Origin: Macrostomum lignano
Taxonomy: Eukaryota
NCBI GenBank assembly: GCA_002269645.1
Contig: NIVC01000359.1
Span: 124,001 to 188,000 of the forward strand
Direction: 5' to 3'
DNA: 64,000 nucleotides
Shown: positions 3,758 through 64,000 of the stretch, piece after piece
Layout of the letters: each line of letters opens with the position of its first letter
How positions within the stretch are numbered: the stretch's first letter is position 1
Notes under the pieces: generated by a model
What the model saw: only the letters and a program-made list of their open reading frames with translations
What the model was told of the DNA's origin: nothing
Database searches by the model: none
Program-made: the position numbers and the translations under genes

Positions 3758-6700
3758 GCCAGCCTCCACGATGCTGCTGCTGATAGTGAGGCGGTCTCGG
3801 CCGCATTTGGGGGCCGCCTCCGGCGCCAGGAAATCGCGGCCCGGGGCCCCATGGAGGCCGCCCGCTGGAACCCATCGGGGCGCCGTCCCAGCCGCGCTTC
3901 TGCCCGAGCGGCGGCATCGGCGGCGGCCTCGGGCCGCGGAACTGCGGCTGGGGCGGAAAAGGGTAGCCGCCACGCCGCTGCTGCTGCGGCATCGGCGGCT
4001 CCTCGTAGGACTCGCCCGAATCGCCGTAGGCTCCGTAATTGCCGTAAGAATCGCCTTCGCCTTTGTCTGAGCCGCCGATTCCCCCCTGCTGCGGCGGCTG
4101 GCCTCGGCGGGACTCTGAACGGCGAATGCCGTAGGCGCCCATGGGGCCAGGCGTGGCCGCGTACGGGTTTTCATGGTGTTCTGTGGCGAACAAGATTGGG
4201 TTTTTGACTGACTGAATCTGTCAAGCCATTCTGCAGCAGTCTACCCACTCAATAGGCTCTACCCACCAAGTCTACTCTACCCACCAAGTCTACTCTACCC
4301 ACCAAGTCTACTCTACCCACCAAGTTTACTCTACCCACCAAGTCTACTTTACCCACCAAGTCTACTCTAACCACCAAGTCTACTCTACCCACCAAGTCTA
4401 CTTTACCCACCAAGTCTACTCTACCCACCAAGTCTACTCTACCCACCAAGTCTACTCTACCCACCAAGTCTACTCTACCCACCAAGTTTACTCTACCCAC
4501 CAAGTCTACTCTACCCACCAAGTCTACTCTACCCACCAAGTCTACTCTACCCACCAAGTCTACTCTACCCACGAAGTCTACTCTACCCACCAAGTCTACT
4601 CTACCCACCAAGTCTACTCTACCCACCAAGTCTACTCTACCCACCAAGTCTACTCTACCCACGAAGTCTACTCTACCCACCAAGTCTAGTCTACCCAAGT
4701 CAGTCTGTTCTGCACTTTTAGTTGATTCTACCCACTCAGTCTGCCTTACCATAATCAGTCGATTTCGACTACCTAATCTACTCTCCATCGTTTCACTCTA
4801 CCCCAACTAAGTCTGATCAGTCTATTCTACCCTAATTAGTCTACTCTATCCACAGTCTACTTTACCCACAGTCTACTCTACCCACACACTATTCTACCCT
4901 GAACGGTTTACTTTACTACAGTCTACTCTACCCCCACAGTCTACTTTACACACAGTCTACTCTCTACCCTAACCATTCTACTCTAAGCTCGTACCCTCTC
5001 AATCTACTTTACCAACAGTCTACTCTACCCTAAACGGTCTACTCTACCAGTGTATCCACACTTAATACGACTAGTCCTACAGTGCCTACTCAGCCTACTA
5101 TACAAGCCACGCAGTCCACTCTCTTAGCCACTCTCACAAAGCACTCTACCAGGCTAGCCGCTTCTTACTAGCACTACAAAGCATCCAATCTCAGATGCTG
5201 TTGAGATGTCTCCTACTCTGCTGTCAATCTGCATGCTTAGCAGGCCTCTCACTTGTCTAGTTTCTCATTTCTAAAGCGTGTCACTGTTGAATGATTGCCA
5301 AACCCTGACACTTGGGCAGAGTAAAAAGAATTGCAGCCTGCGCCCTCCTGTCAAATTGCACTAAATAATTCAAAGGCATTGCTGCAATACCTACTTAGGC
5401 AATAGTACAATGCTATTAAATAATTTACAATAGGACTGTAACAATATAAGTATAATCTAGGAAAATTTCTACAACTTCCTGAAATATAGGGGTGATAACT
5501 CTGGCCAGTCCGCGGACAAATTAGTAAATATGAAAAGTACACAACATTCAAACCAATTAAGCAACCGTATTGCGAGAAGTGTCATTAGGAAAATTCGAAA
5601 AACTTTCTCCCCGAGCAAATGGAAAACAATTACAAGTCTTTCCTGTAATGGACTTTATGGTCTGGTAAAATCAATATAGAATAACACTGAATTCATAGAA
5701 AAACTAGTCGGGATGATACTCGGGCATCTGGGGAAGAATGAAGGTTAGGCAACTGGGGAATGAAGGTTAGGCAACTGGGGAATGAAGGTTAGGCAACTAG
5801 GGAATGAAGCTTAGGCAACTGGGGAATGAAGGTTAGGCAACTGGGGAATGAAGCTTAGGCAACTAGGGACTGAAGGTTAGGCAACTAGGGAATGAAGGTT
5901 AGGCAACTGGGGAATGAAGCTTAGGCAACTAGGGAATGAAGGTTAGGCAACTAGGGAATGAAGCTTAGGCAACTAGGGAATGAAGGTTAGGCAACTAGGG
6001 AATGAAGCTTAGGCAACTAGGGAATGAAAGTTAGGCAACTAGGGAATGAAGGTTAGGCAACTAGGGAATGAAGGTTAGGCAACTAGGGAATGAAGCTTAG
6101 GCAACTAGGGAATGAAGGTTAGGCAACTGGGGAATGAAGGTTAGGCAACTAGGGAATGAAGGTTAGGCAACTGGGGAATGAAGGTTAGGCAACTGGGGAA
6201 TGAAGGTTAGGCAACTGGGAAATGAAGTTTAGGCAACTAGGGAATGAAGCTTAGGCAACTAGGGAATGAAGGTTAGGCAACTAGGGAATGAAGCTTAGGC
6301 AACTAGGGAATGAAAGTTAGGCAACTAGTGAATGAAGACGCTGTCGTCTTCAAAGGTGGGACGATGGTTTATATTGTGTCAATTATTGTTTATGGCTATG
6401 ACATCTATTTATTTAACCTAAATTGAGAGCTAAAAAGCCCCCCACGCCCCTGGCATTAGTTAGTCTAGTGGTATAGTGGGGGGCTGGCCGCCCTGGCATT
6501 AGTTAGTCTAAGTGGTATAGTGGGGGGCTGGCCGCCCCCCACGCCCCTGGCATTAGTTAGTCTAGTGGTATAGTGGTATAGTGGGGGCTGGCCGCCCCCA
6601 CGCCCCTGGCATTAGTTAGTCTAGTGGTATAGTGGTATAGTGGGGGGCTAGCCGCCCCCCCACGCCCCTGGCATTTATTAGTCTAGTGGTATAGTGGGGG

Positions 6701-12700: not shown

Positions 12701-15700
12701 AGTGGGGGCTGGCCGCCCCCACGCCCCTGGCATTTATTAGTCTAGTGGTATAGTAGGGGGCTGGCCGCCCCCCACGCCCCTGGCATTTATTAGTCTAGTG
12801 GTATAGTGGGGGGCTAGCCGCCCCCCACGCCCCTGGCATTAGTTAGTCTAGTGGTATAGTGGGGGCTCGCCGCCCCCCACGCCCCTGGCATTAGTTAGTC
12901 TAGTGGTATAGTGGGGGGCTGGCCGCCCCCCACAACCCTGACATTTATTAGTCTAGTGGTATAGTGGGAGGCTGGCCGCCCCCCACGCCCCTGGCATTAG
13001 TTAGTCTAGTGGTATAGTGGGGGCTGGCCGCCCCCACGCCCCTGGCATTAGTTAGTCTAGTGGTATAGTGGGGGTTGGCCGCCCCCCACGCCCCTGGCAT
13101 TAGTTAGTCTAAGTGGTATAGTGGGGGCTGGCCGCCCCCACGCCCCTGGCATTAGTTAGTCTAGTGGTATAGTGGGGGGCTGGCCGCCCCCACGCCCCTG
13201 GCATTAGTTAGTCTAGTGGTATAGTGGGGGCTGGCCGCCCCCACGCCCCTGGCATTTATTAGTCTAGTGGTATAGTGGGGGGCTCGCCGCCCCACGCCCC
13301 TGGCATTAGTTAGTCTAGTGGTATAGTGGGGGGCTGGCCGCCCCCCACGCCCCTGGCATTAGTTAGTCTAGTGGTATAGTGGGGGGCTGGCCGCCCCCAC
13401 GCCCCTGGCATTAGTTAGTCTAGTGGTATAGTGGTATAGTGGGGGCTAGCCGCCCCCCACGCCCCTGGCATTAGTTAGTCTAGTGGTATAGTAGGGGGCT
13501 GGCCGCCCCCACGCCCCTGGCATTAGTTAGTCTAGTGGTATAGTGGGGGGCTGGCCGCCCCCACGCCCCTGGCATTAGTTAGTCTAGTGGTATAGTGGGG
13601 GCTGGCCGCCCCCCACGCCCCTGGCATTAGTTAGTCTAGTGGTATAGTGGTATAGTGGGGGCTAGCCGCCCCCACGCCCCTGGCATTAGTTAGTCTAGTG
13701 GTAAAGGGGGGCTGGCTCCCCCACCGCTCCACCACCCCTCGAGAACTTTTCCCACATCTAAACACGTCTTTGTAATATGTTACAACTATATTCTAGCCTT
13801 CAAACGACCAGACATCAAATACTTGCTTGCCGACATGTATCGTAATATACTTTTTGCACTAACAATCATACGTGCCGCACTAAAAGATTCACTGTTACTC
13901 TTTAAATACGTATAAAAAGAAAAATAAATTTAAATAAATGTAATTTAATTGTATAAAAAACATAATAGTTAGAGAAATAAAAATACTAAAAAACTGTTTG
14001 CTCTAAAAGAACTTTAAACTAAAAATTTTTCGGATCTCTTGGGAATCGAACCCTGCAGCACTCAATTATATGGAAACTAACTCTGCCACTGAGCCACAAA
14101 TTGCTTACTAAGTTGGCCTATTGTACACGTATTTTATATCGAATATCGCTAATAGCAGCCATTTCTACCATTTTTTCTGCTTTTTCATACATTTCTGCTC
14201 GTTGCATCGCAACGCTTCTACCTAAAAATACGAGTCGCATGTCGTTACAGAGATAACATCAAGGCGCATTCATCCAATGCATTTTCAAATTATGTCAACA
14301 AATTTTTCGGCTGCTAGGCGCCAAAATATTAATTTTCACCTGTTCTGGCAGGTAATCAAACAGGTATTAAGACCTGTTAACCTAAGAATCAGTTTTCAAA
14401 ACTTATTTAGCTGCATAATGCATCCATAGTGCTGTTTTTAGACACCAAACTTGAGTCTCTAGGTCTCGCCAATGCAGAGTTATTAGCAAAAGTATGCTCA
14501 AAATTTGCCCAAAAATGGCCTACTCAAAATTCGGAGCCAATTTTCTCAAAAATACGAATTTTCCAGCCATATTGGCGTATGACCGGTGTAACTTCAGCTA
14601 TTCGACTAAACAATATTGAAAATGCAGAAAAATCGGTGCGCAAAATTTCTTATTTTTCGACTTCAAAGTTTGTACCCCAAAAGGGCCGTTTTTCAATTAA
14701 CAGGTAAAAAGTACCTGTTAACAGGGGTTTTTTCAGGAGTGTCTTATGTCATTCAAAAGGGCATCCGATGGGCTACAATTTGACACCACATTCGAAAAAA
14801 TTCGCCCAGTAATAAAAATTTTTCTTTAACAACATATGCTTTTTTGGTCGAGTCCCCCGGCCTCTTTTTTCCCCGGTTTCCGGGTCACTGCTCCGCACAG
14901 GTAGGTCCAAATGCTTAGAAAATTTAGGAAAACAAATTTCCATATGTTTGACACGTTTTGTTAAAATTTCAACACCGTAGCTTAAAACACTTTCTTATTT
15001 TTGGAGACTACTTTTTGAAAACGTGACCCAAATTTTCAAAAACACTCTTTTTGACCCTTGTAGCCATATAGAGCAGCAATGAATGGCCCAATCAAGCAGA
15101 TCTCAGCATTTCCGAATAAAAGACATCCATTTGAGTGATTTGGGTTGAAAAATTGAAAAAATCAAGATTTGCATCTGTATAGGATAAGCCTCTTTAAAGT
15201 GCACAAACGGTTTGTACTTTTAAAGTGCAGATAGGCAGCCATGTCAAAAGTACATTTTAGCCCAAAAAATTATAGCGCATCTAAAAGCCCCAGGTGTTGT
15301 TTACATTATGCAGCAGCTCAAAAGCCGCGCTATTGCGCGTCCTTTTCGCTGCAGTACGGGCAAGGTTGAAAAACATGTACAAAAAATTGGCCGAAAAATT
15401 GCATTTTTAAAAATCAGATGCAGTTTGCTCAAAAATACGAATTTTCCAGCCATATTGGCGTATGACCGGTGAAACTTTAGCTATTCGACTAAACAATATT
15501 GAAAATGCAGAAAAATCGGTGCGCAAAATTTCTTATTTTTCGACTTCAAAGTTTGTACCCCCAAATGGGCCGTTTTTCACTTAACAGGTAAAAAGTACCT
15601 GTTAACAGGGGTTTTTTCAGGAGTGTCTTATGTCATTCAAAAGGGCATCCGATGGGCTACAATTTGACACTACACTCGAAAAAATTCGCCCCATTTTAAA

Positions 15701-30865: not shown

Positions 30866-33800
30866 CTAGTTAAATTTCTTGACTTTTCGCAATGCAGAGT
30901 ACTTAGAATGGACATCCGCGCGCATCCTACATCGGCACCAATGGTGTAAACGCAGACGCAAAAATGCTTTAAATAAACGGTCTTGCACTTGTTCGAAATG
31001 CGTTTCACAAGCTGGGAAGGAAATTCCAGATGATACGAGCTACAAATATTTGTTTTACTCGGAATGCAACTTTCGGCTGCACAATGAAGGCTGCTGATTG
31101 AGCGCTGAAGATGGCTTCCATTTTGTTAAAGCTTTGCAGTGCAGTTGGCGAAGGCAGTTTTAGGCCACAGACCGCGTGAGACAGCGTCTTATGCCGTAGA
31201 TGCACTCCAGTAGGATTCGTAGCAGTCAAAACCAACTTGCAGCTCTGGCATTCCAGGACGCCACTCTTATTGAGCACAAAGCCGCCCACATACTCGGTCG
31301 CTTCTTCTAGAATTGAATCATGAGCCGGCTGCTCTTGTTGTATCAATATTTTGGAAATAGTCGCATCACCCCGATCATCAGCCTTTGAATCACTCGCGGC
31401 AGACGTGCTGGTCGTGCTGAGTTCAACAGCTGCACAGTCTGCTGTGACTGCAGCTACACAGCCGTCGTCTTCGCAGTTTCTGGCCGCAGAATCTGGCTGG
31501 GAGAGGCCACTGGCAGCTACAGATCGCAGTGCCCCAAGAAACGCTGCAATCTCAGGCTTTTCGTTGAAGCCATTGCGGCCACGGATGATGCAGAACAGAT
31601 TCTGTAATTCAAGTTTATACATGCATTTTACTTTAAATAAATTTACAACTTTAGATAGTCAGTCAGTCAGTCAGTCAGTCAGTCAGTCAGTCAGTCAGTC
31701 AGTCAGTCAGTCAGTCAGTCAGTCAGTCAGTCAGTCAGTCAGTCAGTCAGTCAGTCAGTCAGTCAGTCAGTCAGTCAGTCAGTCAGTCAGTCAGTCAGTC
31801 AGTCAGTCAGTCAGTCAGTCAGTCAGTCAGTCAGTCAGTCAGTCAGTCAGTCAGTCAGTCAGTCAGTCAGTCAGTCAGTCAGTCAGTCAGTCAGTCAGTC
31901 AGTCAGTCAGTCAGTCAGTCAGTCAGTCAGTCAGTCAGTCAGTCAGTCAGTCAGTCAGTCAGTCAGTCAGTCAGTCAGTCAGTCAGTCAGTCAGTCAGTC
32001 AGTCAGTCAGTCAGTCAGTCAGTCAGTCAGTCAGTCAGTCAGTCAGTCAGTCAGTCAGTCAGTCAGTCAGTCAGTCAGTCAGTGAGTCCTCATTGATTCC
32101 CCCTTGAGCAGTGGCATCTCATTGAATTTGATTCAGTGACTTGAGTCATCTGATTCTGTGACTGATGAGTCATCTGACTCTGTGCGTGCATCAATATGGT
32201 ATATTAGAAGTACATATTTCAGCTAAGTACTATTGCTCTCTGCACCTGTGATTACACTATTTTTACATTTGTAAAATGTTTGATTTAAAGTACGAGTATC
32301 AAGGTAACTCACCTCAACGTGATCCTGTGTTAGTCTTCGCGTGCACACGAACTCGTAGTGCTCATCTTGAATCAACGCTGTGCTGAGCTGTCGTATTGCA
32401 GAAGTCGACAGAATCAATGCTTCTTTGAATTTCATAGTCGCCTTTAGCGACTTTCCGCTGCTAGGAAGGAACTGCCAGCTTCTGATGAAGGCTTCGACGC
32501 TGCGCAACTCGTCAATCTTCTCTGCAAGCGAATTTCGCGTGATCGGCTGCTTAAATCCTTTGTCGAAAATGTGCGTTGAATTCAACAAGTCGAATGCATC
32601 ATTGACTCTCTGCACAAAATCTGCTGTCTGCAAGGCATCGATAGGCAGTTCTTGATGATGCACTAGTGTCTTGATTCCGCTGGCAACCGAGTGACTAAAG
32701 ATCTGAGCGGCTAGGGAGACCTTCATTTTCTGGCCCAATTGAAGGTTGAAGTGCGCATCGCTCAGCCAACTCGCCAGTCTAAGCGATCGGCTGCTGTCCC
32801 TTTCGTAGAAGTCGACTAGGTCTTGCCATCTTGCTTGCTTGTCTCCATCGAAAATGATGTTGTTCTTCATGAGGGCATTGCGCGCATTCTTTAGGCAGTG
32901 CGGGACATCGATAATCACAAATATGGGCTTTTGTGTCACAGGATGGTTTAGAAATGGAGCCGCAGGATTTACCTAAACAAATAAAAAGTTGCAAGGCTTA
33001 AAGTAATCAAAACGTTTACTGGCACAAATAACATTGATTTTTTTATTTTGAAGTTTTAAATCTCGAAACAATAGCAATATAATTTTTAGTGCGAAATAAA
33101 TTTTTAATATATCCAAACTTGAGCATTATTTCCTCTATGCTTTAATATTTATAAGGGATTATATCATTAAAGTACTGAACTCACCAGTTTGCTGAGGTAG
33201 GCCCCATTGTGTAGTTTCTTGGTCAACAACCAGTGCGACAACCCGAACTCCAGCTTCATGGGCAGCGCGAAGGCACTCGTCTATCGCAGACTTAAATCGA
33301 AGCTGACCGAGGGTTCTATGTACTTGATAGTATGCAATTGGTTGCTTCCAGTTGCTCCAGATTCCACGGAGAACAGCAACAACGGCTTCATTTACGGGTC
33401 TCTGAAGATTTTGCTCAAGGTCCTCAGCAGAGTGTTCATCATAGCCTACGACTCGGTCACCATGATGGTCGTAGCGGATGCTGGCTGATAAACTCATGCC
33501 ATCCAAGCAGAGAGTTGCTAGTCGCTGTGGCTCGGGGTCATTAGCAAGCTTTTCATGCAACAGCTTGATCGTTTTTTGGCAGACACCAGGGGATGAAAAG
33601 AACTGCCGGGTTCGCCGCTTCAGCGATGACTCGGATGGAAGTGGAAAATTCCACTTGTTGCGCAGCATTCGGTAGGCAGCTGGGCTCTTGTGGTGCAGCT
33701 GGATAGATTCGGAAATACTTTTCTTTGACCATCGCATTCCACGGGAATCAACAAACTGCTGCTTGATGCTGCTCTGAATCACTCGACTCATTGTCGCACT

Positions 33801-34395
33801 TTTGAATTTTGTTGCTTTTGCCTTGGCGATCTGGTCTTGAAGTCGCTTGATGGTTACGCCCTGTCGGTAGATGCAATCCATGTAGGATTTTTTCCTCTGC
33901 TGAACCGGGACATCGGATAGCTGCAATCTTTTCGGGAAAATGATGGACGAAGCAGATTTTGTCGACCTTTTGCTCCCATTGTAATGGTTTCTCGGCACTT
34001 GTCGAAATGCAGTCAAATCGCTGAAGTTCGGGCGGGTACATATTATCCGCCTCCTCATCCGTTCTCACAACAGATGGTTCCAGGTCTTCTCGAACAAGGC
34101 GAGGCATTACTAGCTCCTTGTCTGGCAAAGCGTTCCATCGCAGGCGAGAAGTTTGGTCATGTCGTTGAAGCTCACAATTATAGGCAGAGTCTGTAAAATG
34201 CTTACTGCATATTCTTAGGCATTTTCTTCTTATTTCATTGAGATCCATGAAGTTGAGCTCTAAGATTTGCTGCCAGCGTTTTGCCACATTGTCGTCGTTT
34301 GGAAAGCGATGAAGGCGAATCGGAATTCCGTCTTTAACTGGCGATGTAACGGAACTCGTACAGCCAGAAGCGCAGCAAAGCCGACTATTTAGCAT
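30866..34395 (-). pseudogene. THAP-domain P-element transposase (THAP9-like), 3 exons, three apparent frameshifts
   Basis: THAP motifs CCASGC..LHRFP..RW..ICSKHF..NALP. Transposase motifs LCLDGMSL, VVDQ, IIDVPHCLKNARN, QKMKVSLAAQIFSHSVA, RRLTQDHVE|NLFCIIRG and FLRLRLHHWC. Exons about 34395-33185, 32972-32313, 31601-30866. Frameshifts near 34000, 33202-33205 and about 31040. Confidence 0.88.
31657..32083. repeat. (AGTC)n microsatellite, about 106 perfect units, in P transposase intron 2
   Basis: Uninterrupted tetranucleotide run. Confidence 0.98.
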
Positions 34396-35409
34396 AGTCA
34401 GCAAATCAATTTTATGTGTAATAAACCACTGAAACGAGGAGATACTCTATGCAGACTCTATTAATAAATCTTATTTTATTGAAGAAATCTTTACAATATC
34501 TTATATTAATAAAGGCAGGCACTTCGAGTCGAGAAAATGAACAGAGCTTGTCTTGTTAATTGTGTTTGCGAAATCTAGTTTGTTTTATAGCATCTGTGGT
34601 GGGCTCTGTGGGTGGGTTAACTGTGGGTGGGCTAGACTGTTGCGATCCTATCTTAATTCTTAATTCCTTACTTCTTATTGGCTCACGTAGCGACCCTATA
34701 ACCCTCCCCACTCCAACTCCGCGCGCCTATATAGATATAACCCTGTACAGTTAACCCCCACCTCTTTTTATTTCCTCCCCAAGCGCTCTCTCGTCCAACT
34801 GCTATATACTCGTACATTTTAGTGGCATTAGTCAATGTACAATCAGCTGAACTCATTAAGTTGTTTACGTCTGCATGCTCCACTCGTAAGCCGCCCACTG
34901 TCGTTTTATATAATATAGCTTATGAATGCTTTACTTGCTACTGAACTGAAAGTAGAAAAACGAAAAACCAAGGACATTTGCCTAAGTGGCCTATCTAGTT
35001 ATTATAGTATCTGTGGGACGGTCTAGAGAAGCGGTAGTCGGCGCGTTCCAGGCCTGCGTTGGAGAGCGCAGAAAACACACGAGCGGGCAGCTACCCGCCC
35101 CAACCGCGCCTTTAAAGGCCACGACCCACCCAGGGTCGGCCCCCACGCCACCCCCGCCCCACCACCAGCCCAGCCACCCACCGGCCAATCACGGCGCAGC
35201 TGGGGGAGGGGCAGCCCGGGGTGAGGGCCAGACAGGGCGGCTCAGCCAACCAGCGCGCAGACAACACAATGGCAGCTAAGCGGCTTAAACCGCTGAGCAT
35301 ATAACACCAAAACAAATACGGCGGTATGCCGCGTGGGGGGGCAGAGGGCAGAGTGCACTTTGGCAGGGCAAGCGCACGGGCACAACAATTAGAATGGTCC
35401 CTCCATATA

Positions 35410-52221: not shown

Positions 52222-52489
52222 TTATTGGGACCGGGGCTCACTGCTCTCGCAGTGTCTCTTAAGTTAACAGGTTAACTGGAGTCCCGATTAGTTCAAGATT
52301 TGCTTTGCATTTTTTCTGGCGTCATCAACTCGTCTATATTTAACGTGTGAGAAATGATATCCAAAATGCCGGGATTAATCATTGAGCCCTAATCAGGAGG
52401 GTTCTTATCTTTGAAAAGCGGCTTCTGCCACAACCCCCGACACTTCATATATCCATTAGGGCTAGGGTTAGGGTTAAGCTTGTCGGAGA

Positions 52490-53500
52490 CATGATTTTTC
52501 GTAAATGTGAAGTGTCGGAGACATGAAGTGTCGGAGATATGCAGTGTCGGAGATATGAAGTGTCGGAGACATGAAGTGTCGGAGATATGCAGTGTCGAAT
52601 ATATGAAGTGTCGGAGACATGAAGTGTCGGAGACATGAAGTGTCGGAGACATGAAGTGTCGAGACGTGAAGTGTCGGAGATATGAAGTGTCGGAGACATG
52701 AAGTGTCGGAGATATGCAGTGTCGAGACATGAAGTGTCGGAGACATGAAGTGTCGGAGATATGAAGTGTCGAAGATATGAAGTGTCGGAGACATGAAGTG
52801 TCGGAGACATGAAGTGTCGAAGATATGAAGTGTCGAAGATATGAAGTGTCGGAGACATGAAGTGTCGGAGACATGAAGTGTCGGAGACATGAAGTGTCGG
52901 AGACGTGAAGTGTCGGAGATATGAAGTGTCGGAGACATGAAGTGTCGAAGATATGAAGTGTCGGAGATATGCAGTGTCGAGACATGAAGTGTCGGAGACA
53001 TGAAGTGTCGGAGATATGAAGTGTCGGAGACATGAAGTGTCGGAGACATGAAGTGTCGAGACGTGAAGTGTCGGAGATATGAAGTGTCGGAGACATGAAG
53101 TGTCGGAGATATGCAGTGTCGAGACATGAAGTGTCGGAGATATGCAGTGTCGAGACATGAAGTGTCGGAGATATGAAGTGTCGAAGATATGAAGTGTCGG
53201 AGACATGAAGTGTCGGAGACATGAAGTGTCGGAGACATGAAGTGTCGGAGACGTGAAGTGTCGGAGACATGAAGTGTCGGAGACATGAAGTGTCGGAGAC
53301 ATGAAGTGTCGGAGACGTGAAGTGTCGGAGATATGAAGTGTCGGAGACATGAAGTGTTGGAGATATGCAGTGTCGAATATATGAAGTGTCGGAGACATGA
53401 AGTGTCGAAGATATGAAGTGTCGAGACATTGTCGAGACATATGAAGTGTCGGAGACATGAAGTGTCAGAGATATGTGAAGTGCTTTCGGAGATATGATAT
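52490..53500. repeat. 16-bp minisatellite (GAAGTGTCGGAGACAT)n with 15-bp variants
   Basis: About 60 copies, preceded by TTAGGGCTAGGGTTAGGGTTA. Confidence 0.95.
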
Positions 53501-54055
53501 TTTAAAGATATGAAAGTTCCCCCCGCCCCCCCCCCTAATCCCGAATTTCATAACCCAGCTAGCTAAATAAATGCTAGAACCACAATCCATTATCTCCCTT
53601 ACCAAAACATTGATCCCAAAGTCTGGGCTAAATACTTTGCCGCTATTTTATTATTATAATAAAATCTTTGATCTGTTTGTAATGTTAGTCTCTTTTGAGA
53701 AATTTAATAACTCACCGTGTCTGTGTTCTGTTTTTTATGCTAGGCAGCTAGATAGAAATATGATTATCAAAATTTGGTATATGATGGTTTATTTCGGATT
53801 TTTTTCTTTATGTTCATAAAGCAGGGGTTGGTAAAAAATTTTAACCTAAGGGGCATATAGAGGATCCAGCTCATGGCTGCTGGCCAGATGAGAGTGCAAT
53901 GGAGACGGAATGGAAGATGAGAGAAGAGGGGAGAGGGGAGAGGCGATGGGAGGGGAGAGGGGAGAGAATATAGCTGAGAAGAGACACAAACTTTGAGCGT
54001 ACCTTTTAGTTTTATAGCGACCACTTTAAATTGCAGCAGTTCAAACAGCGCAGCG

Positions 54056-54271
54056 ATGTCGGCCGTGTTCAACTTTCAATCGTTATTAACTGTGGTACTG
54101 CTGCTCATTTGCACGTGCGCCTATTTCCGGCATTTATTTCCCAGGCTAATTGATCGCTACAAAACCGGACTGTCCGGCATATTCTGGAAGTGCGCCAGAA
54201 TTGGGGAGCGAAAATCGCCATACGTTGCGTGCTGCTGTCTAGTCATGGCCGCTTGTGTGCTGTTCTACTGA
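54056..54271 (+). CDS. TMEM167: Protein kish (TMEM167), 71 aa, intronless
   Basis: [23 protein letters not shown]...[30 protein letters not shown] is the conserved kish family sequence. Confidence 0.95.
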
Positions 54272-54742
54272 CAATTCATCATTAGTTTGTTTTCTCGTAT
54301 TACAAGGAGAAAATGTGCCTTGTCGAATCAGCGGCTAATAATGCTAAATTAATTCCTGAATTGAATTGAATGAAATATGCGCGTTAGCTGCAGTTCTCAA
54401 AGGCAGTTTCTCCACGACTAAAGTTAGTGCAGAGGTAATTTTAATTGATTTTTATGTGCTGCTTATTCCGTGTCTCGCTTCTGTATAAATGATTATTTAT
54501 GGTAAATTTTGTTTGCCCATTGTTTCTAGGAGAATTGGTGTGAAATTTGATTGATAAATAAATGAAAAGAATCTTGACGTAACAGTGTGCAAAATGGTTT
54601 GTGTTGTTAGCTAATCAAAACGGGTTTCTTGAATTGTTTTTTTCTTGTCTTGTCTGCTGAAAACTGGAAAGTGCATCTACGAGCGTAGGGAACAAGTTTT
54701 CATCTCTTTGATCTTTAAAATGATGAGGGTTGAGTCGCATTG

Positions 54743-55351
54743 TCACTCGCAGTAGATCCAGAAGGCAGTCGCGCTAGCTCTGAAGGTTGGCCTCTCTAGC
54801 AAGCCAGTCACAAAGTCGTCAGTGGCGGGGTCGGTCACAGACCGGGATGCCTGCATTAGAATCTGCTCGGATTTCTGCGCGATCGTCACATGAACAATAA
54901 TCTTATAGCGAGGACAGTTGTAGTTGTTTTTCATCCTGCGCTTCACGTCCTCGGAGACCATTTTGGCCAGCTTGGGACACGCCTTCGGATCGTACTTGGA
55001 CTCTCCGAGGAAGAATCTGAGGCTGTTGTCCACGATTTGTTGCACCTCCTTCGGCGGGAACTTCTTAGTCGAGTCCGGCTCTAGGCGGTAGGTGTTCTCC
55101 ATCTTCTTGACGGGTCGGTTGCGTCGGTGCCTCGCCCGGATGTCGCCGATCCGCTTCTTGAGCATCATGAGGGTCGCCAGGCTCGGCTGTTTTGGCCGAG
55201 GCGTCCCGCCGGCCGCTTTTGGCCTAGCCGGTCCTGCTTCATCCGGACCGTCTGGCGACCCTTTGCCAGCGTTTGACGGCTTCAGCTGGCTGGGACTCGG
55301 AGCCGATACGGTAGAGATTCGCTTCTTGCCGCTGTTCATAACTGTTGGCAT
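54743..55351 (-). CDS. Tctex1-domain dynein light chain (TCTEX1D/DYNLT4-5-like), 202 aa, single exon
   Basis: MENTYRLEP..KFPPKEVQQIV..KYDPKACPKLAKMVSEDVK..PRYKIIVHVTIAQK..ASRSVTDPATDDFVT..ASATAFWIYCE is typical of the Tctex-1 family, with a basic N-terminal extension. Confidence 0.9.
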   Translation of the reverse strand: MPTVMNSGKKRISTVSAPSPSQLKPSNAGKGSPDGPDEAGPARPKAAGGTPRPKQPSLATLMMLKKRIGDIRARHRRNRPVKKMENTYRLEPDSTKKFPPKEVQQIVDNSLRFFLGESKYDPKACPKLAKMVSEDVKRRMKNNYNCPRYKIIVHVTIAQKSEQILMQASRSVTDPATDDFVTGLLERPTFRASATAFWIYCE

Positions 55352-58091
55352 CGACTAAACGTAATCTGCAAATTCTGTCGTAGTTGACTTGTCTGTGTGC
55401 CTTTGCTCAGCTTTTAATTTTTCTGCTTCGAAAAAATACCATGGGAACCTGTGGCTCTCCTTACACTACCAGGCGTCGCTCTCCTGCCCAATAGCCGTAT
55501 GCTAAGCGCTGAGTAAACATTTGAAAGCAGTTGGTTGCTCTCTCTACACTCGGTTGCTGCATATTCCTTCTAGAGGCAGGCAACGAAGTTCTATTTGATG
55601 AGACATTGTGTGCAAACAGTGCAGTCTGCTAGCTTTATATTGGTTTGGTAGTAGGTTCAGTCTCAGAGTATGTCAACCAATTTCGTTTAGGTGATAGTAT
55701 AAAAAAATATCCTCAAACTGTCGGCTTACTAACTTCTTGCTTTGGTTTGGATCCGACCTTGAAATTATGAAGATCAATTACGTGGCCAATTGTGTAGCAT
55801 CCCGCTCTAAATTATTTTTAATCATTTTTGTGCCAAAATTAATTCAAACGGTTGGTGGAGTCAACTAGAATATCGCAGTATTTAGAATTTAAAATAAAAT
55901 CAGGTCAAAGTAGGTCCCAGAAAATCAACCCAGGAGCGTCGTCACCCGGGGGAGGGGCAGGGGACATGCCCCCTCAGTAAAAGCTATGGGGGGCATGCCA
56001 ATGCTTTGTCCGCCCACCCCACCTTGAGACCTGTTATGGAAATCAGTAATTTTGCCTTAGGGCAACTGATGGTTTTCGGCCCCTTGTGGGGAAGCCTTCG
56101 GGCCTCAGGTCTCAGAAATAAATCAATTAGAGTCCTGCCCCCCACTCCTGTCAGATGGTCAGCCCCATTGTAGCTTGATCGTGTGGCGAGCAGTCTAGGT
56201 CCTATAGCTAAGAGAGGGACAGCGAGAGACAAGCAGGGAGAATTTTGAAGGTAGAGATCAGCTAATCCGCAGATTAACTAACCCGCTGCCACCAGCCCGT
56301 ACGTCCTGGCTCACCACACCGGAAATTTCGAAATCGGGCTTCCGACTAGAGGGGGCTTAGCGCTTACCTGCCAACTAGTGTCTTTTTGCTGTCAATCTCG
56401 AAGTCATAGCCGATGTAAAGGGACACTGCTGGGACTTGATCGCATTGGCCATGCAGGTACAGAGGGGACTTGTGCAGGGGATTCTTGCAGTGGCGAGACT
56501 ATGGGGTAGCTACATGTACTATTACATTGCTAAATACGAGGAATTGTACTTTTGGCCTTCAACGCGCCAACTAGCCTCTCGTAGCGCTGATGATACACTA
56601 ACTCGAACTTCGGAGACCGCATAATTCATTACCCGAGCCGCTTGGCGAACCTAGAGTGCACAAAGTACATCTCTAGCGCCGAGTTTGCACTATTGGCAAT
56701 TTTGCTCACTGATTTGATAGATTGATCGACTGAGAACCACCTTGCCATTGGTCCACTGTAACCGGCGCCTACTAGCTTAGCTACTCATCTGAGCCATCGG
56801 CGAACAAAGAAATAAAACCGATAAAAATAACTGTCGGATTTAACCTTCTCCTTAAATCACTTCACACTTCAGATTGAATTGGAGTTTTAGACTACTAATA
56901 GTATTATTAAGTGATTTCTGCCTCGATAACAGCACTGCTGAACAAAATGAGCCAATCCCAATCCAGCTACTGAAATAGGGGACAGATAAGGAATCACCCA
57001 ATCAAGCAAGTCTAGGCAGCCTCTCACCCAACCAATCAGAAACTCAACAGCCGGAGACCAGGTAATCCACAGTGACCGAATCGGCTTAGTGCTTCGCAGC
57101 TGTAGGCCCGGGATGATGCTGATGTCACAATCTTTGTAGATAGCTAGCAGGTGATGCTCTTAACTTTGATGTTCACTGCTGATGACCGGGGGAATTCGTC
57201 CTTGATGATGGGGGGAGTCGCAATCCGGGGATCAAGAAACGACGGTCAGGCCAGGGAGAGAGCAAGTTCCTGGCCGGTCACCAGAAAGGGTTTTGCAGGG
57301 TTAGTCCGAGCAGGCCAAAAACACCGGTTTAAATAGCCGCCAAGTGGACCGCAGTTGGTTATAATGGAACACGTCGATTGTCATTGGCTGAGCCGATTTG
57401 TTAAAATGAGCGTCGAATTTTCTGATTGGCTGAGCTTGCTGCATGCTACCCAGAATTACGTGACCGGGAGATCCTATCAGTTCCTTCGGGGCACGTTTAT
57501 GACGAGAATTAAAAAAAATGACATGGCACATCTAACAAAAAATGACCGCTGTGTATCCCAATGGAAACGCGCAAAGTTTTGGCCATGACACAGACTTTGC
57601 AAAAATGACAAATCATGACACTTCCAAATTGCTCGATTTTTGTAAAACTTCCAGCCTCTCTGACAATATATACTGTATATACAGTATTCCGTAGTGTACG
57701 ATCCTTTAAGCCTGTATTGGCGCACAACTGCACATTTGTGCAGTGCTGATAAATACTGTTAGACTAAAATTAACGACTGTAAATACTTAGCAATTTATAC
57801 AATAAACTTTACCATGTAATAAGAAAACAGAGATCTTATATTCATATTAATTTAGTCTAAAATAGAATTAGTATAGCTACTAAAGAAACTCTAAAAATCA
57901 ATTAAGTAGATTGTGTGGAAGGGAAAGTAGAAAGTGAGTTGCAGCATTTAAATTTTAAATTTTGTTGAACATGCAAATAGCTGTATGTTGCAAACATAGA
58001 TGGTTTATTCATATACATCACAATATACTAAATCATTTTATAATCTAAAATGAAAATTCCAAAGTAAGTCTATAATACGTAATACACCGTC

Positions 58092-59060
58092 TGTCATTTT
58101 TGGCACAATGTGCAATAGTCATATTTTACAGCTTGTGCAGCAGTCATTTTTTACACAGCGAGCACTACCAGAAAAGTAGTTAAACGCTACTGCAAGTAAA
58201 ACCAACGGACATCAGAACTTACATTTGAAATAGCCTATAAAAAGGAGGAACTATAATATAGTGTAAATGAAATACTGTCTTTTGTCATTTTTGGCACAAT
58301 GTGCAATCGTCATATTTTACAGCTTGTGCAGCAGTCATTTTTACACAGCGAACACTACCAGAAAAGTAGTTGACGCTACTGCAAGTAAAACAAACGGACA
58401 TCAGAACTTACATTTGAAATAGCCTTTAAAAAGGAGGAACTATAAATATAGTGTAAATGAAATACTGTCTTCTGTCATTTTTGGCACAATGTGCAATCGT
58501 CATATTTTACAGCTTGTGCAGCAGTCTTTTTTACACAGCGAGCACTACCAGAAAAGTAGTTAAACGCTACTGCAAGTAAAACCAACGGACATCAGAACTT
58601 ACATTTGAAATAGCCTATAAAAAGGAGGAACTATAATATAGTGTAAATGAAATACTGTCTTCTGTCATTTTTGGCACAATGTGCAATCGTCATATTTTAC
58701 AGCTTGTGCAGCAGTCATTTTTACACAGCGAGCACTACCAGAAAAGTAGTTGACGCTACTGCAAGTAAAACCAACGGACATCAGAACTTACATTTGAAAT
58801 AGCCTATAAAAAGGGAGGAACTATAATATAGTGTAAATGAAATACTGTCTTCTGTCATTTTTGGCACAATGTGCAATCGTCATATTTTACAGCTTGTGCA
58901 GCAGTCATTTTTACACAGCGAGCACTACCAGAAAAGTAGTTGACGCTACTGCAAGTAAAACCAACGGAAATCAGAACTTACATTTGAAATAGCCAAGGAA
59001 CAACAACATATAGTGTAGATAGAGGATTAGATCTTCTGTCATTTTTGGTACAATGTGCAA
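58092..59060. repeat. 190-bp tandem array (5 units plus partials)
   Basis: Units start TGTCATTTTTGGCACAATGTGCAAT at 58092, 58283, 58473, 58663, 58853 and 59037. Confidence 0.95.
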
Positions 59061-59716
59061 CCGTCAGATTTTAGTGCAATGCAAGTAGTAGCTAGTAAAG
59101 TGCTTTTTGGATCTACTAAGAAGTTAATGCAAGAAATGCAAGAGTAAATAATGTCATTTTTGGCACTATGTGCAATTGTCAGTCGTGTTAGATGTGCAAG
59201 TGCAATCGTCACATTTTTAAGTGATTAATTGAGGCTAGTAGAGCATTTAAATTTAAAGACTATTAGAAAGACATCATGGATGCAATTAGCATGCAGGAAA
59301 GAAAATTCGAGTAATTAATTAGTAACATTATAGATAAAGTGGATAGCGTATATTTAAGATATTTTTAAATTATACAATATAAATATTTTATACTGTTAGA
59401 AACTATTTTTCGAACCTCACTTTTTAGTATCCCAAACTTTGTTTAAATACTATTATTTAACTCATAAATTTTTGGTTCAGTAATATTTCAACTTTTTCCT
59501 TAAGTCTTCCTTAAGTCGGTATAAACGTTAAAGCGCAAATATATATATGCCGTGCAGGGATCTTTCAAATATTTTATTATTTAGCTAAAAATTTAAATTT
59601 CCACAAAAATTTTGTTCTGTTTCAAATATTAATAATTTGAATCTTGAATTATAATAGGAATTGGCGACACAGGAAGTTTGCCTGAGACTTTCGAATTATT
59701 AAAACGTAATATAAAT

Positions 59717-60676
59717 GTAGCGACACATGTAATACAATAGACCCGGATCAGCGCTTAAAATTAGGGACAAAAATGACAATGGTTAAGCATTCAAAGGTAG
59801 CGACACATATAATACAATAGACCCGGATCAACGCTTAAAATTAGCGACAAAAATGACAATGGTTAAGCATTCAAAGGTAGCGACACATATAATACAATAG
59901 ACCCGGATCAGCGCTTAAAATTAGGGACAAAAATGACAATGGTTAAGCATTCAAAGGTAGCGACACATATAATACAATAGACCCGGATCAACGCTTAAAA
60001 TTAGCGACAAAAATGACAATGGTTAAGCATTCAAAGGTAGCGACACATATAATACAATAGACCCGGATCAACGCTTAAAATTAGCGACAAAAATGACAAT
60101 GGTTAAGCATTCAAAGGTAGCGACACATGTAATACAATAGACCCGGATCAGCGCTTAAAATTAGGGACAAAAATGACAATGGTTAAGCATTCAAAGGTAG
60201 CGACACATATAATACAATAGACCCGGATCAACGCTTAAAATTAGCGACAAAAATGACAATGGTTAAGCATTCAAAGGTAGCGACACATATAATACAATAG
60301 ACCCGGATCAGCGCTTAAAATTAGGGACAAAAATGACAATGGTTAAGCATTCAAAGGTAGCGACACATATAATACAATAGACCCGGATCAACGCTTAAAA
60401 TTAGGGACAAAAATGACAATGGTTAAGCATTCAAAGGTAGCGACACATATAATACAATAGACCCGGATCAACGCTTAAAATTAGCGACAAAAATGACAAT
60501 GGTTAAGCATTCAAAGGTAGCGACACATGTAATACAATAGACCCGGATCAGCGCTTAAAATTAGGGACAAAAATGACAATGGTTAAGCATTCAAAGGTAG
60601 CGACACATGTAATACAATAGACCCGGATCAGCGCTAAAAAAAACGACAAAAATGACAAGTTTTAAGCATTTAAAGG
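59717..60676. repeat. 80-bp tandem array (12 units)
   Basis: Unit GTAGCGACACATATAATACAATAGACCCGGATCAGCGCTTAAAATTAGGGACAAAAATGACAATGGTTAAGCATTCAAAG with exact 80-bp spacing; last unit degenerate. Confidence 0.96.
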
Positions 60677-60770
60677 GTGGCAAGTCAACCCTATGTGACT
60701 TGAGCAAGATTCTGCTTGAACTCTAGTCGCGTGATTCATAGTATTTAGTATGATTTCCTCAGATTTATTA

Positions 60771-63700
60771 CTATCCCGCTAGTTCAGATAATAGACTAAA
60801 AGCTATAGTTTTAGATTTTCTTTGCGAGTTGTGCTTAGGACTGTGCTGATTTACAGATTCGGACTGCTGCGCGTCGCTCGCCTGCTGCGCGACGCTCGCC
60901 TGCTGCGCATCGCTCGACTGCTGACCGCCAGGACCTCGTTTCTTCGTCTTCTTCGCCTGCTGCGCATCGCTCGACTGCTGACCACCAGGACCTCGTTTCT
61001 TCGCCTTCTTCGCCTGCTGCGCATCGCTCGACTGCTGACCACCAGGACCTCGTTTCTTCGCCTTCTTCGCCTGCTGCGCATCGCTCGACTGCTGACTGCC
61101 AGGACCTCGTTTCTTCGCCTGCTGCGCATCGCTCGACTGCTGACTGCCAGGACCTCGTTTCTTCGCCTGCTGCGCATCGCTTGACTGCTGACCGCCAGGA
61201 CCTCGTTTCTTCGCCTGCTGACCGCCAGGACCTCGTTTCTTCGCCTGCTGACCGCCAGGACCTCGTTTCTTCGCCTTCTTCGCCTCCTTTGCCTGCTGCG
61301 CGTCGCTCGCCTGCTGACCGCCAGGACCTCGTTTCTTCGCCTTCTTCGCCTCCTTTGCCTGCTGCGCGTCGCTCGCCTGCTGACCGCCAGGACCTCGTTT
61401 CTTCGCCTCCTTTGCCTGCTGCGCGTCGCTCGCTTGCTGCGAAATCGCTAGATCATACAGGTTCCGGGCGACCTCCTCCCCTTTTTTAGCAATTAAGACA
61501 GTCGTTGCTAAATAGCTTTGCTTAGCTGTTGCTTTTGAGTGCAACATTCTCCTGTGCATAAGATCCTGCTCTTCTTCGCTTAGAAGTTCACCACCTTTAG
61601 TCGTAAAAAAGTGACGATAAGTACGGACGTTGACTGTTTTCAAATCATTTAGGATCGGAAACGTTTCTCGAGATTTGCGCAAATAGGTTGAAAAAGAATG
61701 CAGTCCAATGTTCTGAAGCTGACCATAATCAAAAAAGTAATCAGCTGCGACCGCTCCGTTTGCAACACGATTATTTCCATACTCCAATAAAATTTCCTTA
61801 ATATCGATGACTGAAACTTGAATAACACCTAATTTGTCCGTCTTATGATTTAGGATTTCAAACATTGCTTGCGGATCAATATCCAGTTGGCCTTTCCATT
61901 CGAAAAATTGTTCCATTTTGGCATTCGAGACTGCATCGGCGCGGTGAAAGTTTCCTTTGCCAAAAAGAAAATACAGACCAATAAATATCATTTGTTCGCG
62001 AGATCCTGTAGGCTTAGATTCGGCGGCTGCGAAGAAGAAATCGACAACATCAAGGACAGTTTTGAGCTCGCTTACGGTCAGTCTACTTTTGTCCAGCGCA
62101 TATCGACGACGTGACTCGGCAAGTTTCTTGTCCTGTAATCGGGACTTTCCATAACCCTTACAGATGAAAAGGAAAGATTCGAGATCTTTGGTCAACTGAG
62201 CCGTTGAAACGAATTTAGAAAACGAGCTCTTCAGGTACACTCCAAAACGTTTTAGACCTTCAACATATGTCTTCGTTCCATCGGAGCAAGATTGAGACTT
62301 GCTAGTTAAAAACTCGTTAATCCTAGAACGGTGCTTCTCGCGAATAATATCGACCAGACTAGAAACTCCGGTAATAGACATAATTTTTGAAATAGCTCTG
62401 CGTGCTTGTGCCCGCGTCGATTGGGCAAGCCTTCCTCCGGGAAAATTTTTCAGGAAATCTTCGAAATCTTCTAACGATGGAACTAAATTGTCTTTTTCGT
62501 CATCTGGCGTATATTGAGAGCAATGAGAGGTGCTAGATTTTGACTTCCAACTTTGAAGGACATAGTTGGATACATTCGCCGTCTTGATGTCTTTAATGGA
62601 TTCCTTTGCCTCTTCTACGCTCATTTCGTGCCAGTGGGTTAAATGGCTGAAAAGACTGCTTTTTTGAGGAAGGTCACACTTCGGACAAATTATATCAGAA
62701 CTGCAGTTTTCTTCGGCTGCATCAGCGTCATCTTTTGGATTCTCTACACCTTTCGTCAGATGCATTTTGCTTGTCTCTTTCTTTCTTTCAGCATTGAGAC
62801 GATCTTTGGTAAATTTTTTGGTCGCCATTATCAAGCTCTTGCGTCCTTCGGACTGAAGTTTGTCTTTATGAAAATGTTTAAAGTGGTCGGCAAACCTCGA
62901 CTGTTTAATTAGATGAGTTGGGTCTAGATGGCACCAATAGTCATTGCCTGCTCTTTCTGCCGAGGTGGACTTTTTGGTCGTTGACTCTTTAGACGGTAAA
63001 CCGAAACGTTCATTGTTGAATTTGATTAATTCTTTTTTGATTTCGTCAAAGGAGCCGTATAACTCGTAGTTCTGATGATTTCGATCAAAGTGCTGCTTAA
63101 TCCTTGACTCCGTAATCAAATGACTGCTATCAAGATGGCAAACATATTGAATACCTTTTCGAGGTTTGTTACTGGAAATGCTAACGCCAAGATTCTCCAG
63201 TGCACGAAAAGGAGTCTTTTCACTTTTAGTAGACTTTTCCAAATCATCGTCGTCTTCGTCGTCAATAACAATCTGAATTATTTCGTTGGATTCTTCCGAC
63301 AGCCTTGGTTGCAGGACAACTTTATCACTCTTAACAGGACACTCTACCCGTGGCCAGATGTTGTCAGGTGTATCAGCGTCTAAGTCTACATTGCGCGCAT
63401 GACATTGAGGCCAACTTCTGATGGTCTTAAGGCCTTGATGGCCGAAATCCTGTGGTTGCTGGCCAGACTGAGCTGGATTATCTGGGACTTCTAGCACTAC
63501 TGTTCCTTCAACATGCACTCCTTCTGTTCCTTCAACGTGCAATCCTTCTGCTCCTTCAACATGCACTCCTTCTGTTCCTTCAACGTGCAATCCTTCTGTT
63601 CCTTCAACATGCACTCCTTCTGTTCCTTCAACGTGCAATCCTTCTGTTCCTTCAACATGCACTCCTTCTGTTCCTTCAACGTGCAATCCTTCTGTTCCTT

Positions 63701-64000
63701 CAACATGCAATCCTTCTGTTCCTTCAACATGCACTCCTTCTGTTCCTTCAACATGCACTCCTGTTCCTTCAACATGCACTCCTTCTGTTCCTTCAACATG
63801 CACTCCTTCTGTTCCTTCAACATGCAGGTCCTGGCTGTTAGATTTATCCACCAGATGGCTAGACGACTGAGCTGGATTAATTAATTCACCTTGCAGAAAT
63901 AATTCTTCCATTTCATGCATTGTTATAGGAGTATCAGTGAGTAGTTGTAAGAGACTACAACTAGAGGCTCCATTTTCTGGAGGCTCTGAAGGCAGCTCCA
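60771..64000 (-). CDS. Zinc-finger plus tyrosine recombinase (phage-integrase fold) protein of a Crypton-like or virus-derived mobile element; 5' incomplete
   Basis: Intronless frame open to the window edge (at least 1076 codons). Catalytic-like motifs: HRADAV (R 61941-61943), HKT (K 61842-61844), RTYRH (61611-61625), [12 protein letters not shown] (H 61539-61541, Y 61512-61514). C2H2 finger ICPKCD..HLTHWH; internal 24-bp and C-terminal coding repeats. Confidence 0.8.

Follow-up and report, generated by a model that had tools for sequence, protein, structure and literature searches.

The question raised by this stretch of the flatworm Macrostomum lignano genome is whether the unusually long gene at its end belongs to a mobile element and, if so, whether that gene encodes the enzyme that moves it. 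The DNA analysed here (64,000 nucleotides, positions 124,001 to 188,000 of contig NIVC01000359.1, assembly GCA_002269645.1; referred to as the window) closes with an open reading frame (ORF) at 60771..63920 on the minus strand, which a first-pass annotation, made from the sequence alone, had taken for a zinc-finger tyrosine recombinase belonging to a Crypton-like DNA transposon, a large cargo element or an endogenous DNA virus. We find that the ORF lies within a 9,380-bp block, here called element A, and regard it as practically certain that this is a discrete, recently mobile element with the ORF as its only gene. Element A is in all likelihood a Crypton-like DNA transposon which carries a new recombinase family and has been active recently.

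Counted from the listed ATG at 63918-63920, the ORF encodes 1049 amino acids (aa) and is by three-fold the longest in the window, where the runner-up has 346 aa. Its translation over 60771-63998 comprises 1076 codons, the sole stop being the terminal one, and the frame reaches the window edge, as the first-pass annotation had described. In an extended locus on the same contig (L001, about 23.3 kb with 10 kb on each side of the ORF; window coordinates equal 74074 minus L001 coordinates), the frame measures 1117 codons from stop to stop, with an ATG at window-equivalent 64074-64076. The ORF is intronless and intact in both copies of element A. The deposited protein model (P0001, 1090 aa) is one 10-aa basic-repeat unit shorter than the genomic ORF.

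The second copy of the ORF (P0014) came from the 90% cluster of the protein and is located on contig NIVC01001526.1 (L010). A blastn comparison of the two loci returned one common block, L001 7203-16586 matching L010 7187-17691 at about 99% identity, with boundaries that can be placed to the single base; outside it, the two copies have unrelated flanks and different neighbouring genes. Element A itself occupies L001 7207-16586, from window position 57488 to window-equivalent 66867/66871, and about 2.9 kb of it, including its other end, are located past the end of the window. The earlier coordinates thus hold for the gene and have to be widened for the element, which runs from 57488 to beyond 64000. 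Across 3354 aligned nucleotides (nt) of the ORF the two copies differ by no substitution and by two in-frame repeat indels (9 and 18 nt), and the left non-coding part upstream of the ORF (about 2.7 kb) contains 4 mismatches in 2747 nt. The copies are 9,380 and 10,501 bp long, and the gap between these lengths reflects the number of units in two internal tandem arrays, an 80-bp array and a 190-bp array, which are larger in L010 by 320 bp and 757 bp, respectively.

The state of the locus before insertion can be read from the same assembly. The DUF1242 gene at 54047-54271 is encoded identically on contigs NIVC01004139.1 (L011) and NIVC01001324.1 (L013), and in both of these the DUF1242 gene, a Tctex-1 gene and a RING-finger gene are present, the long ORF is absent and the interval is 9.4 kb shorter. 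The flanks of L001 match L011 and L013 at 98-99.9% identity and meet with a 4-bp overlap; the empty site reads ...ACGA-CCCC-GAAGG..., and the filled site shows CCCC at each boundary. Because empty sites are found on L011 and L013, element A is an insertion in one of three redundant copies of the locus, younger than their divergence. It occupies the intergenic interval between the Tctex-1 and the RING-finger gene, the latter being located beyond the window end. The alignment of copies proposed by the first-pass annotation has in this way defined both the ends (L001/L010) and the empty sites (L011/L013). The empty site varies slightly, reading CCCC in L011 (13443-13446) and CCC in L013 (about 4219-4221). 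The host genes beside the insertion (54047-55351) are DUF1242/Kish on the plus strand and Tctex-1 on the minus strand, with PDCD9 further down.

Within the window, element A is made up of the following parts.

57488..64000, minus strand: in-window part of element A, defined by blastn of L001 against L010, sharp boundaries and empty sites
57488..57491, no strand: 4-bp boundary repeat, GGGG on the plus strand and CCCC on the element strand, seen at each boundary of the two copies, and a single time in the empty site
57490..57503, plus strand: 14-bp arm GGCACGTTTATGAC, its sole occurrence in the window; the partner is at L001 7211-7224
57504..57610, no strand: subterminal region with three copies of AAAATGAC
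58090..59073, no strand: 190-bp tandem array of 5.2 copies with AAAATGAC in every unit, from tandem-repeat analysis; more copies in L010
59713..60676, no strand: 80-bp tandem array of 12.1 copies with one AAAATGAC per unit, starting about 95 bp past the stop codon
60771..64000, minus strand: the single ORF of element A, from translation and copy comparison

The ends are of particular importance for the question of how the element moves. The arm GGCACGTTTATGAC occurs exactly twice in the 23.3 kb of L001, in opposite orientation, and the two occurrences form a perfect inverted pair, placed 8 bp inside one boundary (L001 7211-7224) and 2 bp inside the other (57490-57503). If the ends were joined at CCCC, the arms would stand on both sides of a 6-bp spacer, and the core sites of tyrosine recombinases consist of arms of 11-13 bp and a spacer of 6-8 bp (PMC3212892). 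At the left junction, both copies carry the same six bases beside the arm, CCTATA, and at the right junction are found the bases of the respective target, CCGAAG or CCACGC, which have only CC in common with CCTATA. This is the pattern that an exchange across a mostly heterologous overlap would leave. The first-pass annotation had seen no terminal inverted repeats (TIRs), which is correct for the window, where one 14-bp arm is located at 57490-57503, and does not extend to the element, whose partner arm lies outside. A repeat search of the 23-kb locus likewise returned no long TIR and no long terminal repeat (LTR); the 14-bp arms are shorter than the length setting of that search and surfaced in the copy-to-copy comparison. 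To the left of the L001 insertion point, the host sequence GTCATA...ACGACCCC (L011 about 13400-13450) resembles the element's own arm followed by CCCC, with a 5-base insertion, and the target in L010 (7150-7190) ends in CTGCCCC; at two sites, this arm-like likeness of the targets is indistinguishable from chance.

Inside the ends, short motifs are reiterated at a density that sets the element apart from its surroundings. The motif AAAAATGAC has 31 matches in L001 as compared with 0.63 expected, and all 31 are located within element A and none in the 13.9 kb of flanks; they occupy the left subterminal 270 bp (five copies), the units of the 80-bp array, the 190-bp array and the right subterminal 120 bp. 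Of the 29 matches of AAAATGAC in the window, 26 fall within 57515-60656. The reiterated AAAATGAC and AAAAATGAC are plausibly candidate accessory sites for protein binding, with the zinc fingers of the ORF product as the binders.

Besides the ORF, element A contains no further ORF of at least 105 aa, and likewise none is present within 10 kb upstream of the ORF. Reverse transcriptase (RT), RNase H, capsid and polymerase were absent from the whole element according to ORF reading and Pfam, in agreement with the first-pass annotation, which had seen neither RT nor RNase H. Since no tRNA and no Rfam family was found in the window, there is no tRNA-type attachment site in it.

The protein encoded by the ORF shows the domain order that had been described from the sequence, from an acidic repeat through three zinc-finger-like motifs, a helical region and a catalytic-type domain to a basic tail, as repeat analysis and motif reading bear out. 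Its parts are listed here from the N-terminus, all on the minus strand.

about 63500-63830, minus strand: N-terminal acidic 8-aa repeat, a 24 bp x 13.8 tandem repeat
62628..63140, minus strand: the three zinc-finger-like motifs together, from motif reading and weak Pfam and profile matches
63075-63140 (aa 261-282), minus strand: zinc-finger-like motif 1, CHHC-like, C-x5-H-x9-H-x4-H
62868-62933 (aa 330-351), minus strand: zinc-finger-like motif 2, CHHC-like, C-x5-H-x9-H-x4-H
62628-62687 (aa 412-431), minus strand: zinc-finger-like motif 3, C2H2-like, C-x2-C-x10-H-x3-H
62088..62486 (aa 479-611), minus strand: helical N-terminal domain, core-binding-like, in an AlphaFold2 model with a predicted local distance difference test (pLDDT) of 85
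61452..62087 (aa 612-823), minus strand: catalytic-type C-terminal domain, from the AlphaFold2 model, Foldseek, and residue conservation and spacing
60864..61445 (aa 826-1019), minus strand: C-terminal basic low-complexity repeat, rich in Lys and Arg, from composition; the tandem repeat of this tail measures 57 bp x 9.5 (60896-61439)

Candidate active-site residues of the window protein are R660, K693, R769, H794 and Y803, and Arg766, in R-T-Y-R769, stands where the HxxR motif of tyrosine recombinases has its first His, a replacement that the first-pass annotation had already pointed out.

An exhaustive search of 1.84 billion cluster representatives returned ten relatives, which are 23-35% identical to the protein and have E values between 4e-36 and 1.6e-4. 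A word-indexed protein search with the single sequence as query returned only the protein itself, and word-indexed searches with alignment queries missed even known members of the family. The order of parts is common to all relatives and runs from a CHHC-like finger through a C2H2-like finger and a helical domain to a C-terminal domain; the terminal low-complexity repeats are unrelated from member to member. The Pfam family zf-U11-48K matches the window protein at E 0.023 and one relative at 6.7e-5, profile searches of PDB sequences gave weak matches to the fingers of GTSF1 and BCL11A, and Phage_int_SAM_1 matches one relative only, at E 0.57. Matches of the type Sarcoglycan, Guanylate_kin and Phage_ORF5 were set aside as repeat noise, and a La-protein match at E 0.0027, from a 4-sequence profile against PDB, was taken as chance. 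A literature search turned up no account of an element of this kind, whether in flatworms or in other organisms.

Apart from those in M. lignano, the relatives are located on short contigs of environmental or SRA assemblies with a guanine-cytosine content of 0.32-0.42, two of them from a single sample. The environmental contigs come under ERZ23491819, ERZ23498364, ERZ27279858, SRR29257315, SRR25569785, SRR28060605 and Ga0193947. A locus search with the four closer sequences as query found one further relative on a JGI metagenome contig and none among the IMG/VR viral contigs. Three relatives have no intron, and in three others the catalytic domain is interrupted by one or two canonical GT-AG introns; the latter are therefore eukaryotic. 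Two loci from different SRA runs (L005 and L009) have a common intron position just before the hairpin that bears the Lys, where the gene calls P0003, P0005 and P0007 end. Two further calls, P0009 and P0011, are halves of one gene split by a GT-AG intron (L006 224-1282 and 1721-2482; also L007), and the gene call at L006/L007 ran into the intron, masking the first catalytic Arg. The same contig sequence is found here in two assemblies, ERZ23498364 and ERZ27279858.

With these relatives, the conservation of the candidate active site can be followed across the family alignment. The first Arg is kept in 9 of the 10 relatives that cover its column, the tenth being restored by splicing, and the Lys (in a predicted beta-hairpin), the second Arg, the His and the Tyr are each present in all 7 relatives covering them. 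The spacing of these residues was compared with that in five recombinases of Escherichia coli (XerC, XerD, FimB, FimE and IntA from NC_000913.3). From Arg to Lys it is 29-33 in the family and 24-27 in the E. coli enzymes, from Lys to Arg 64-76 and 65-75, from Arg to His 25 and 23, and from His to Tyr 9 and 9-10, respectively.

An AlphaFold2 model of the two-domain core, built on the 11-sequence alignment, has a mean pLDDT of 85 and a predicted template-modelling score (pTM) of 0.64, and its best PDB match in Foldseek is XerA, with an alignment that spans the full length (E 0.012, probability 1.00, template-modelling score (TM) 0.32/0.38); Cre is also listed. The catalytic domain modelled alone (pLDDT 86, pTM 0.86) has poxvirus topoisomerase IB as its top four matches (E 0.4-0.75, TM 0.43-0.48); the other matches with TM of at least 0.40 are an integrase of Staphylococcus aureus (0.40) and two bacterial topoisomerases IB (0.41-0.42), and the rest are below 0.25. 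The recombinase/topoisomerase IB class is the sole fold class returned, with weak scores, by the structure search that the first-pass annotation had suggested. The protein is a highly divergent tyrosine-recombinase-like enzyme which is captured by no curated family.

Element A is not alone in this genome. A paralogue of the protein in M. lignano (P0010; PAA91811 / PAA87763), 24% identical, belongs to a cluster of three members, each on a contig of its own. A single ORF of 726 aa makes up its body and is the only one in a second element of about 8 kb, element B, which was delimited on contigs NIVC01000073.1 (L003 8481-16903) and NIVC01000217.1 (L014 7692-15640), where the two copies are 99.2-99.4% identical and the flanks unrelated. 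The ends of element B consist of a direct repeat of 4-5 bp, CCAT or CCCAT, with imperfect inverted arms beside it; the 7-mer CCTGTAA occurs in 12 copies within the element and in none in the flanks, and an internal array of 451 bp x 7 holds the 5' part of the ORF. The copy on L014 lies inside the span of a UQ_con gene model. Elements A and B, which have the same layout, different sequences and distantly paralogous proteins, are what an enzyme that co-evolves with its own ends predicts.

From these observations a mode of transposition can be proposed. The ORF product very probably is a tyrosine-recombinase-type enzyme that moves element A, and would cut and rejoin DNA through a 3'-phosphotyrosine at Tyr803. 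The two ends would meet such that the 14-bp arms surround the 6-bp spacer in an arm-spacer-arm core site. Exchange with the target may need the CC/CCCC microhomology alone, the remaining spacer being heterologous, by analogy with the integrases of conjugative transposons of the Bacteroides and Tn916 type. The zinc fingers and the basic tail may bind the reiterated AAAATGAC in the subterminal regions and arrays, which would serve as accessory sites.

Several points weigh against this proposal. None of the 11 family members matches PF00589, PF12012 or PF11917 at E up to 10, and neither the whole protein nor its core gave a relevant match in Pfam, NCBIfam or PHROGs. Searches of PDB sequences with phmmer and hmmsearch, using the protein and three family profiles, returned zinc-finger and chance matches only, and hhalign against the five E. 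coli recombinases gave P 0.28-0.33, which is not significant. The Foldseek scores, with E from 0.012 to 0.75 and TM below 0.5, are weak, and the Tyr is located in the loop that the model predicts with the lowest confidence (residues 186-193, pLDDT below 50). At the first position of HxxR, where each of the five E. coli enzymes has His, the family shows Thr (5), Ser (1) or, in the window protein, Arg. With regard to the DNA, two copies were seen per element, so the target preference for CCCC rests on two insertions; no molecule with joined ends was observed; and the 4-bp repeat also fits a 4-bp target-site duplication.

These points are the basis of the alternative that survives best, in which element A is non-autonomous and depends for its movement on an unrelated transposase acting in trans, such as a DDE enzyme generating 4-bp target-site duplications, and in which the DNA-binding protein encoded by the ORF has been captured or is a passenger. 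Each end bears the 4-bp repeat and has an inverted repeat close by, which is in keeping with this explanation, as are the weak structural scores and the lack of sequence-profile support for the recombinase assignment. However, the arms are offset from the boundaries by 8 bp and 2 bp, and the termini proper would lack an inverted repeat if CCCC were a duplication; moreover, both insertions of element A show the same CCCC. A 24%-identical paralogue is the lone gene of element B, which has different ends and the same layout, as co-evolution of enzyme and ends predicts, and five residues of active-site type are kept at canonical spacing across relatives of 23-35% identity. We therefore consider movement in trans unlikely.

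Far less probable is that the ORF is a domesticated, recombinase-derived host gene in repeat-rich DNA, comparable to the DUF3504 genes ZMYM2-4, QRICH1 and KCTD1. In favour of it, a gene model exists in the annotation of the Mlig_3_7 assembly, which was derived from a genome-guided transcriptome (PMC5730564), and some eukaryotic relatives are interrupted by one or two canonical GT-AG introns, with a common intron position in two of these relatives. Instead of the single-copy, syntenic gene by which the first-pass annotation would have recognised a host gene, the analysis found the same gene at an unrelated locus, accompanied by 2.7 kb and 3.3 kb of matching non-coding DNA, and, in two redundant copies of the locus, a clean empty site where it is missing. 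In addition, the candidate catalytic residues are retained, unlike those of the domesticated DUF3504 proteins (PMC3212892, PMC13465315).

A segmental duplication or an assembly redundancy, with no transposition, is of similarly slight probability. The DV1 assembly is indeed highly redundant, with 180 Mb in blocks of at least 95% identity (PMC5730564). Against a duplication, the common block stops to the base at the inverted 14-bp repeats and is bounded on either side by the same 4 bp, the copies have unrelated flanks while the true redundant copies of the locus are devoid of the block, and element B, unrelated in sequence, behaves alike.

Least probable of all is a DIRS/Ngaro retrotransposon, a Polinton-like element or an endogenous DNA virus with its other genes outside the window: such elements can encode tyrosine recombinases and the window does cut the element, but the full 9.4 kb hold no second ORF of at least 105 aa and no RT, RNase H, capsid or polymerase, the contig extended past 64000 shows no adjacent RT, by which the first-pass annotation would have recognised an ordinary DIRS element, no relative was found in IMG/VR, and the viral structure library was uninformative. 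The complete element and the empty sites together contradict the host-gene, segmental-duplication, retroelement, cargo and viral readings.

With a recombinase-driven DNA transposon as the preferred reading, the remaining question is how element A relates to known systems. Cryptons (Goodwin et al. 2003; Kojima and Jurka 2011) are defined as recombinase-only DNA transposons which have no LTR or long TIR and whose terminal direct repeats of 4-6 bp are taken as the recombination substrate (PMC3212892, PMC13465315). Of the options named by the first-pass annotation, this is the one that the data support, given a discrete element with two near-identical copies, empty sites, 4-bp repeats and a single ORF. 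Like Cryptons, both A and B contain a single gene of tyrosine-recombinase type, with neither RT nor another transposase, and lack an LTR or long TIR, with CCCC (A) and CCAT/CCCAT (B) as terminal direct repeats; the presumed insertion of Cryptons through joined ends (PMC3212892) is also comparable to what we propose for element A. They differ from Cryptons in that no member of the family (0 of 11) matches PF00589 or DUF3504, the domain of CryptonA, and in that the R-H-R-Y tetrad is incomplete, with Arg, Arg and Tyr kept and His replaced. Element A further differs in having CHHC-like and C2H2-like fingers at its N-terminus rather than, for example, GCR1_C, a perfect 14-bp inverted arm pair just within its ends, kilobase-scale arrays with a reiterated 8-9-mer, and an intronless ORF.

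The core site itself recalls Cre/loxP, Flp/FRT and XerCD/dif, where inverted arms of 11-14 bp surround a spacer of 6-8 bp (PMC3212892), as compared with 14 bp and a would-be 6 bp in element A, and the two-domain model finds its best structural match in XerA. In contrast to these systems, the site of element A exists only as two half-sites at the integrated ends, its targets match by CC/CCCC only, and its protein has no detectable sequence similarity to their enzymes.

A different parallel is offered by the integrases of Bacteroides CTnDOT and NBU1 and of Tn916-type conjugative transposons, which use many sites with very short identity at one cleavage point, the rest of the overlap being heterologous, so that one junction retains the overlap of the element and the other that of the target. 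By this description, CCTATA at the left junction of element A and the target's CCGAAG or CCACGC at the right one are alike in kind, whereas the enzymes of these systems are bacterial and have canonical active sites; no relationship to them was found, no search having been aimed at one.

Topoisomerase IB, in turn, has an Arg-Lys-Arg-His-Tyr site with a residue other than His at the position equivalent to the first of HxxR. Poxvirus and bacterial enzymes of this type match the model of the catalytic domain best (TM 0.41-0.48; E 0.4-0.75, not significant); they differ in that no transposon is known to encode them and in having no such zinc-finger or core-binding-like N-terminus.

Other groups have less in common with the element. 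None of the features of DIRS, Ngaro or VIPER elements (RT, RNase H, split or long terminal repeats) was found in the whole of element A. With respect to Starships, there is no match to PF11917 (DUF3435) and no cargo gene in its 9.4 kb, and the large cargo element considered by the first-pass annotation falls away with a 9.4-kb element of one gene. The same size and gene content, and the search of IMG/VR, in which no relative was found, speak against the endogenous DNA virus; as regards Polinton-like and endogenous viral features, no further ORFs were found and the search of BFVD gave only an unnamed top match at E 2.4e-3, which is uninformative. Of the features of DDE transposons with TIRs, there is no DDE domain and the arms are 8 bp and 2 bp off the boundaries; the 4-bp repeat is compatible with them.

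Beyond the placement as Crypton-like, we tentatively suggest, with somewhat less than even confidence, that A and B are founding members of an unrecognised superfamily of eukaryotic tyrosine-recombinase transposons apart from Crypton, DIRS/Ngaro and Starship. Such a superfamily would be marked by a zinc-finger N-terminus, a topoisomerase-IB-like site without the His of HxxR and a complete core site that is readable directly from the ends, and would at present be transposing in an animal that serves as a laboratory model.

Eukaryotic DNA transposons with a tyrosine recombinase are rare and poorly defined, and their ends are usually hard to find. We know of no animal tyrosine-recombinase DNA transposon with an obvious core site. 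In element A, the anatomy can be read entire, from the ends, the empty site and the crossover microhomology to the arm-spacer-arm arrangement, the motif arrays and the intact gene, and the host is a flatworm that serves as a genetic model. As the family is invisible to curated profiles and yielded ten relatives from 1.84 billion representatives, such elements are probably missed or left 'unclassified' in repeat annotation; the copies in M. lignano are at present annotated as ordinary hypothetical protein genes. The family also provides a natural case for active-site drift, His having given way to Thr, Ser or Arg in an enzyme that apparently stays in use.

Elsewhere in the window, three minor observations were made. 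At 4249-4788 on the minus strand, an ORF has a sub-threshold match to the LED repeat (E 5.1e-15, 56 bits as compared with a cutoff of 59). Three overlapping long ORFs in different frames of one strand at 52389-53458 stem from a 16-bp tandem array (L001 20570-21700), and a Phage_ORF5 match of Pfam at this position was rejected as repeat noise. Finally, 31005-34404 on the minus strand contains a P-element/THAP9-like transposase distributed over at least 3 separate ORFs, with Pfam matches to TNP-like_RNaseH_N (E 1.3e-27) and TNP-like_GBD (E 5.4e-26).

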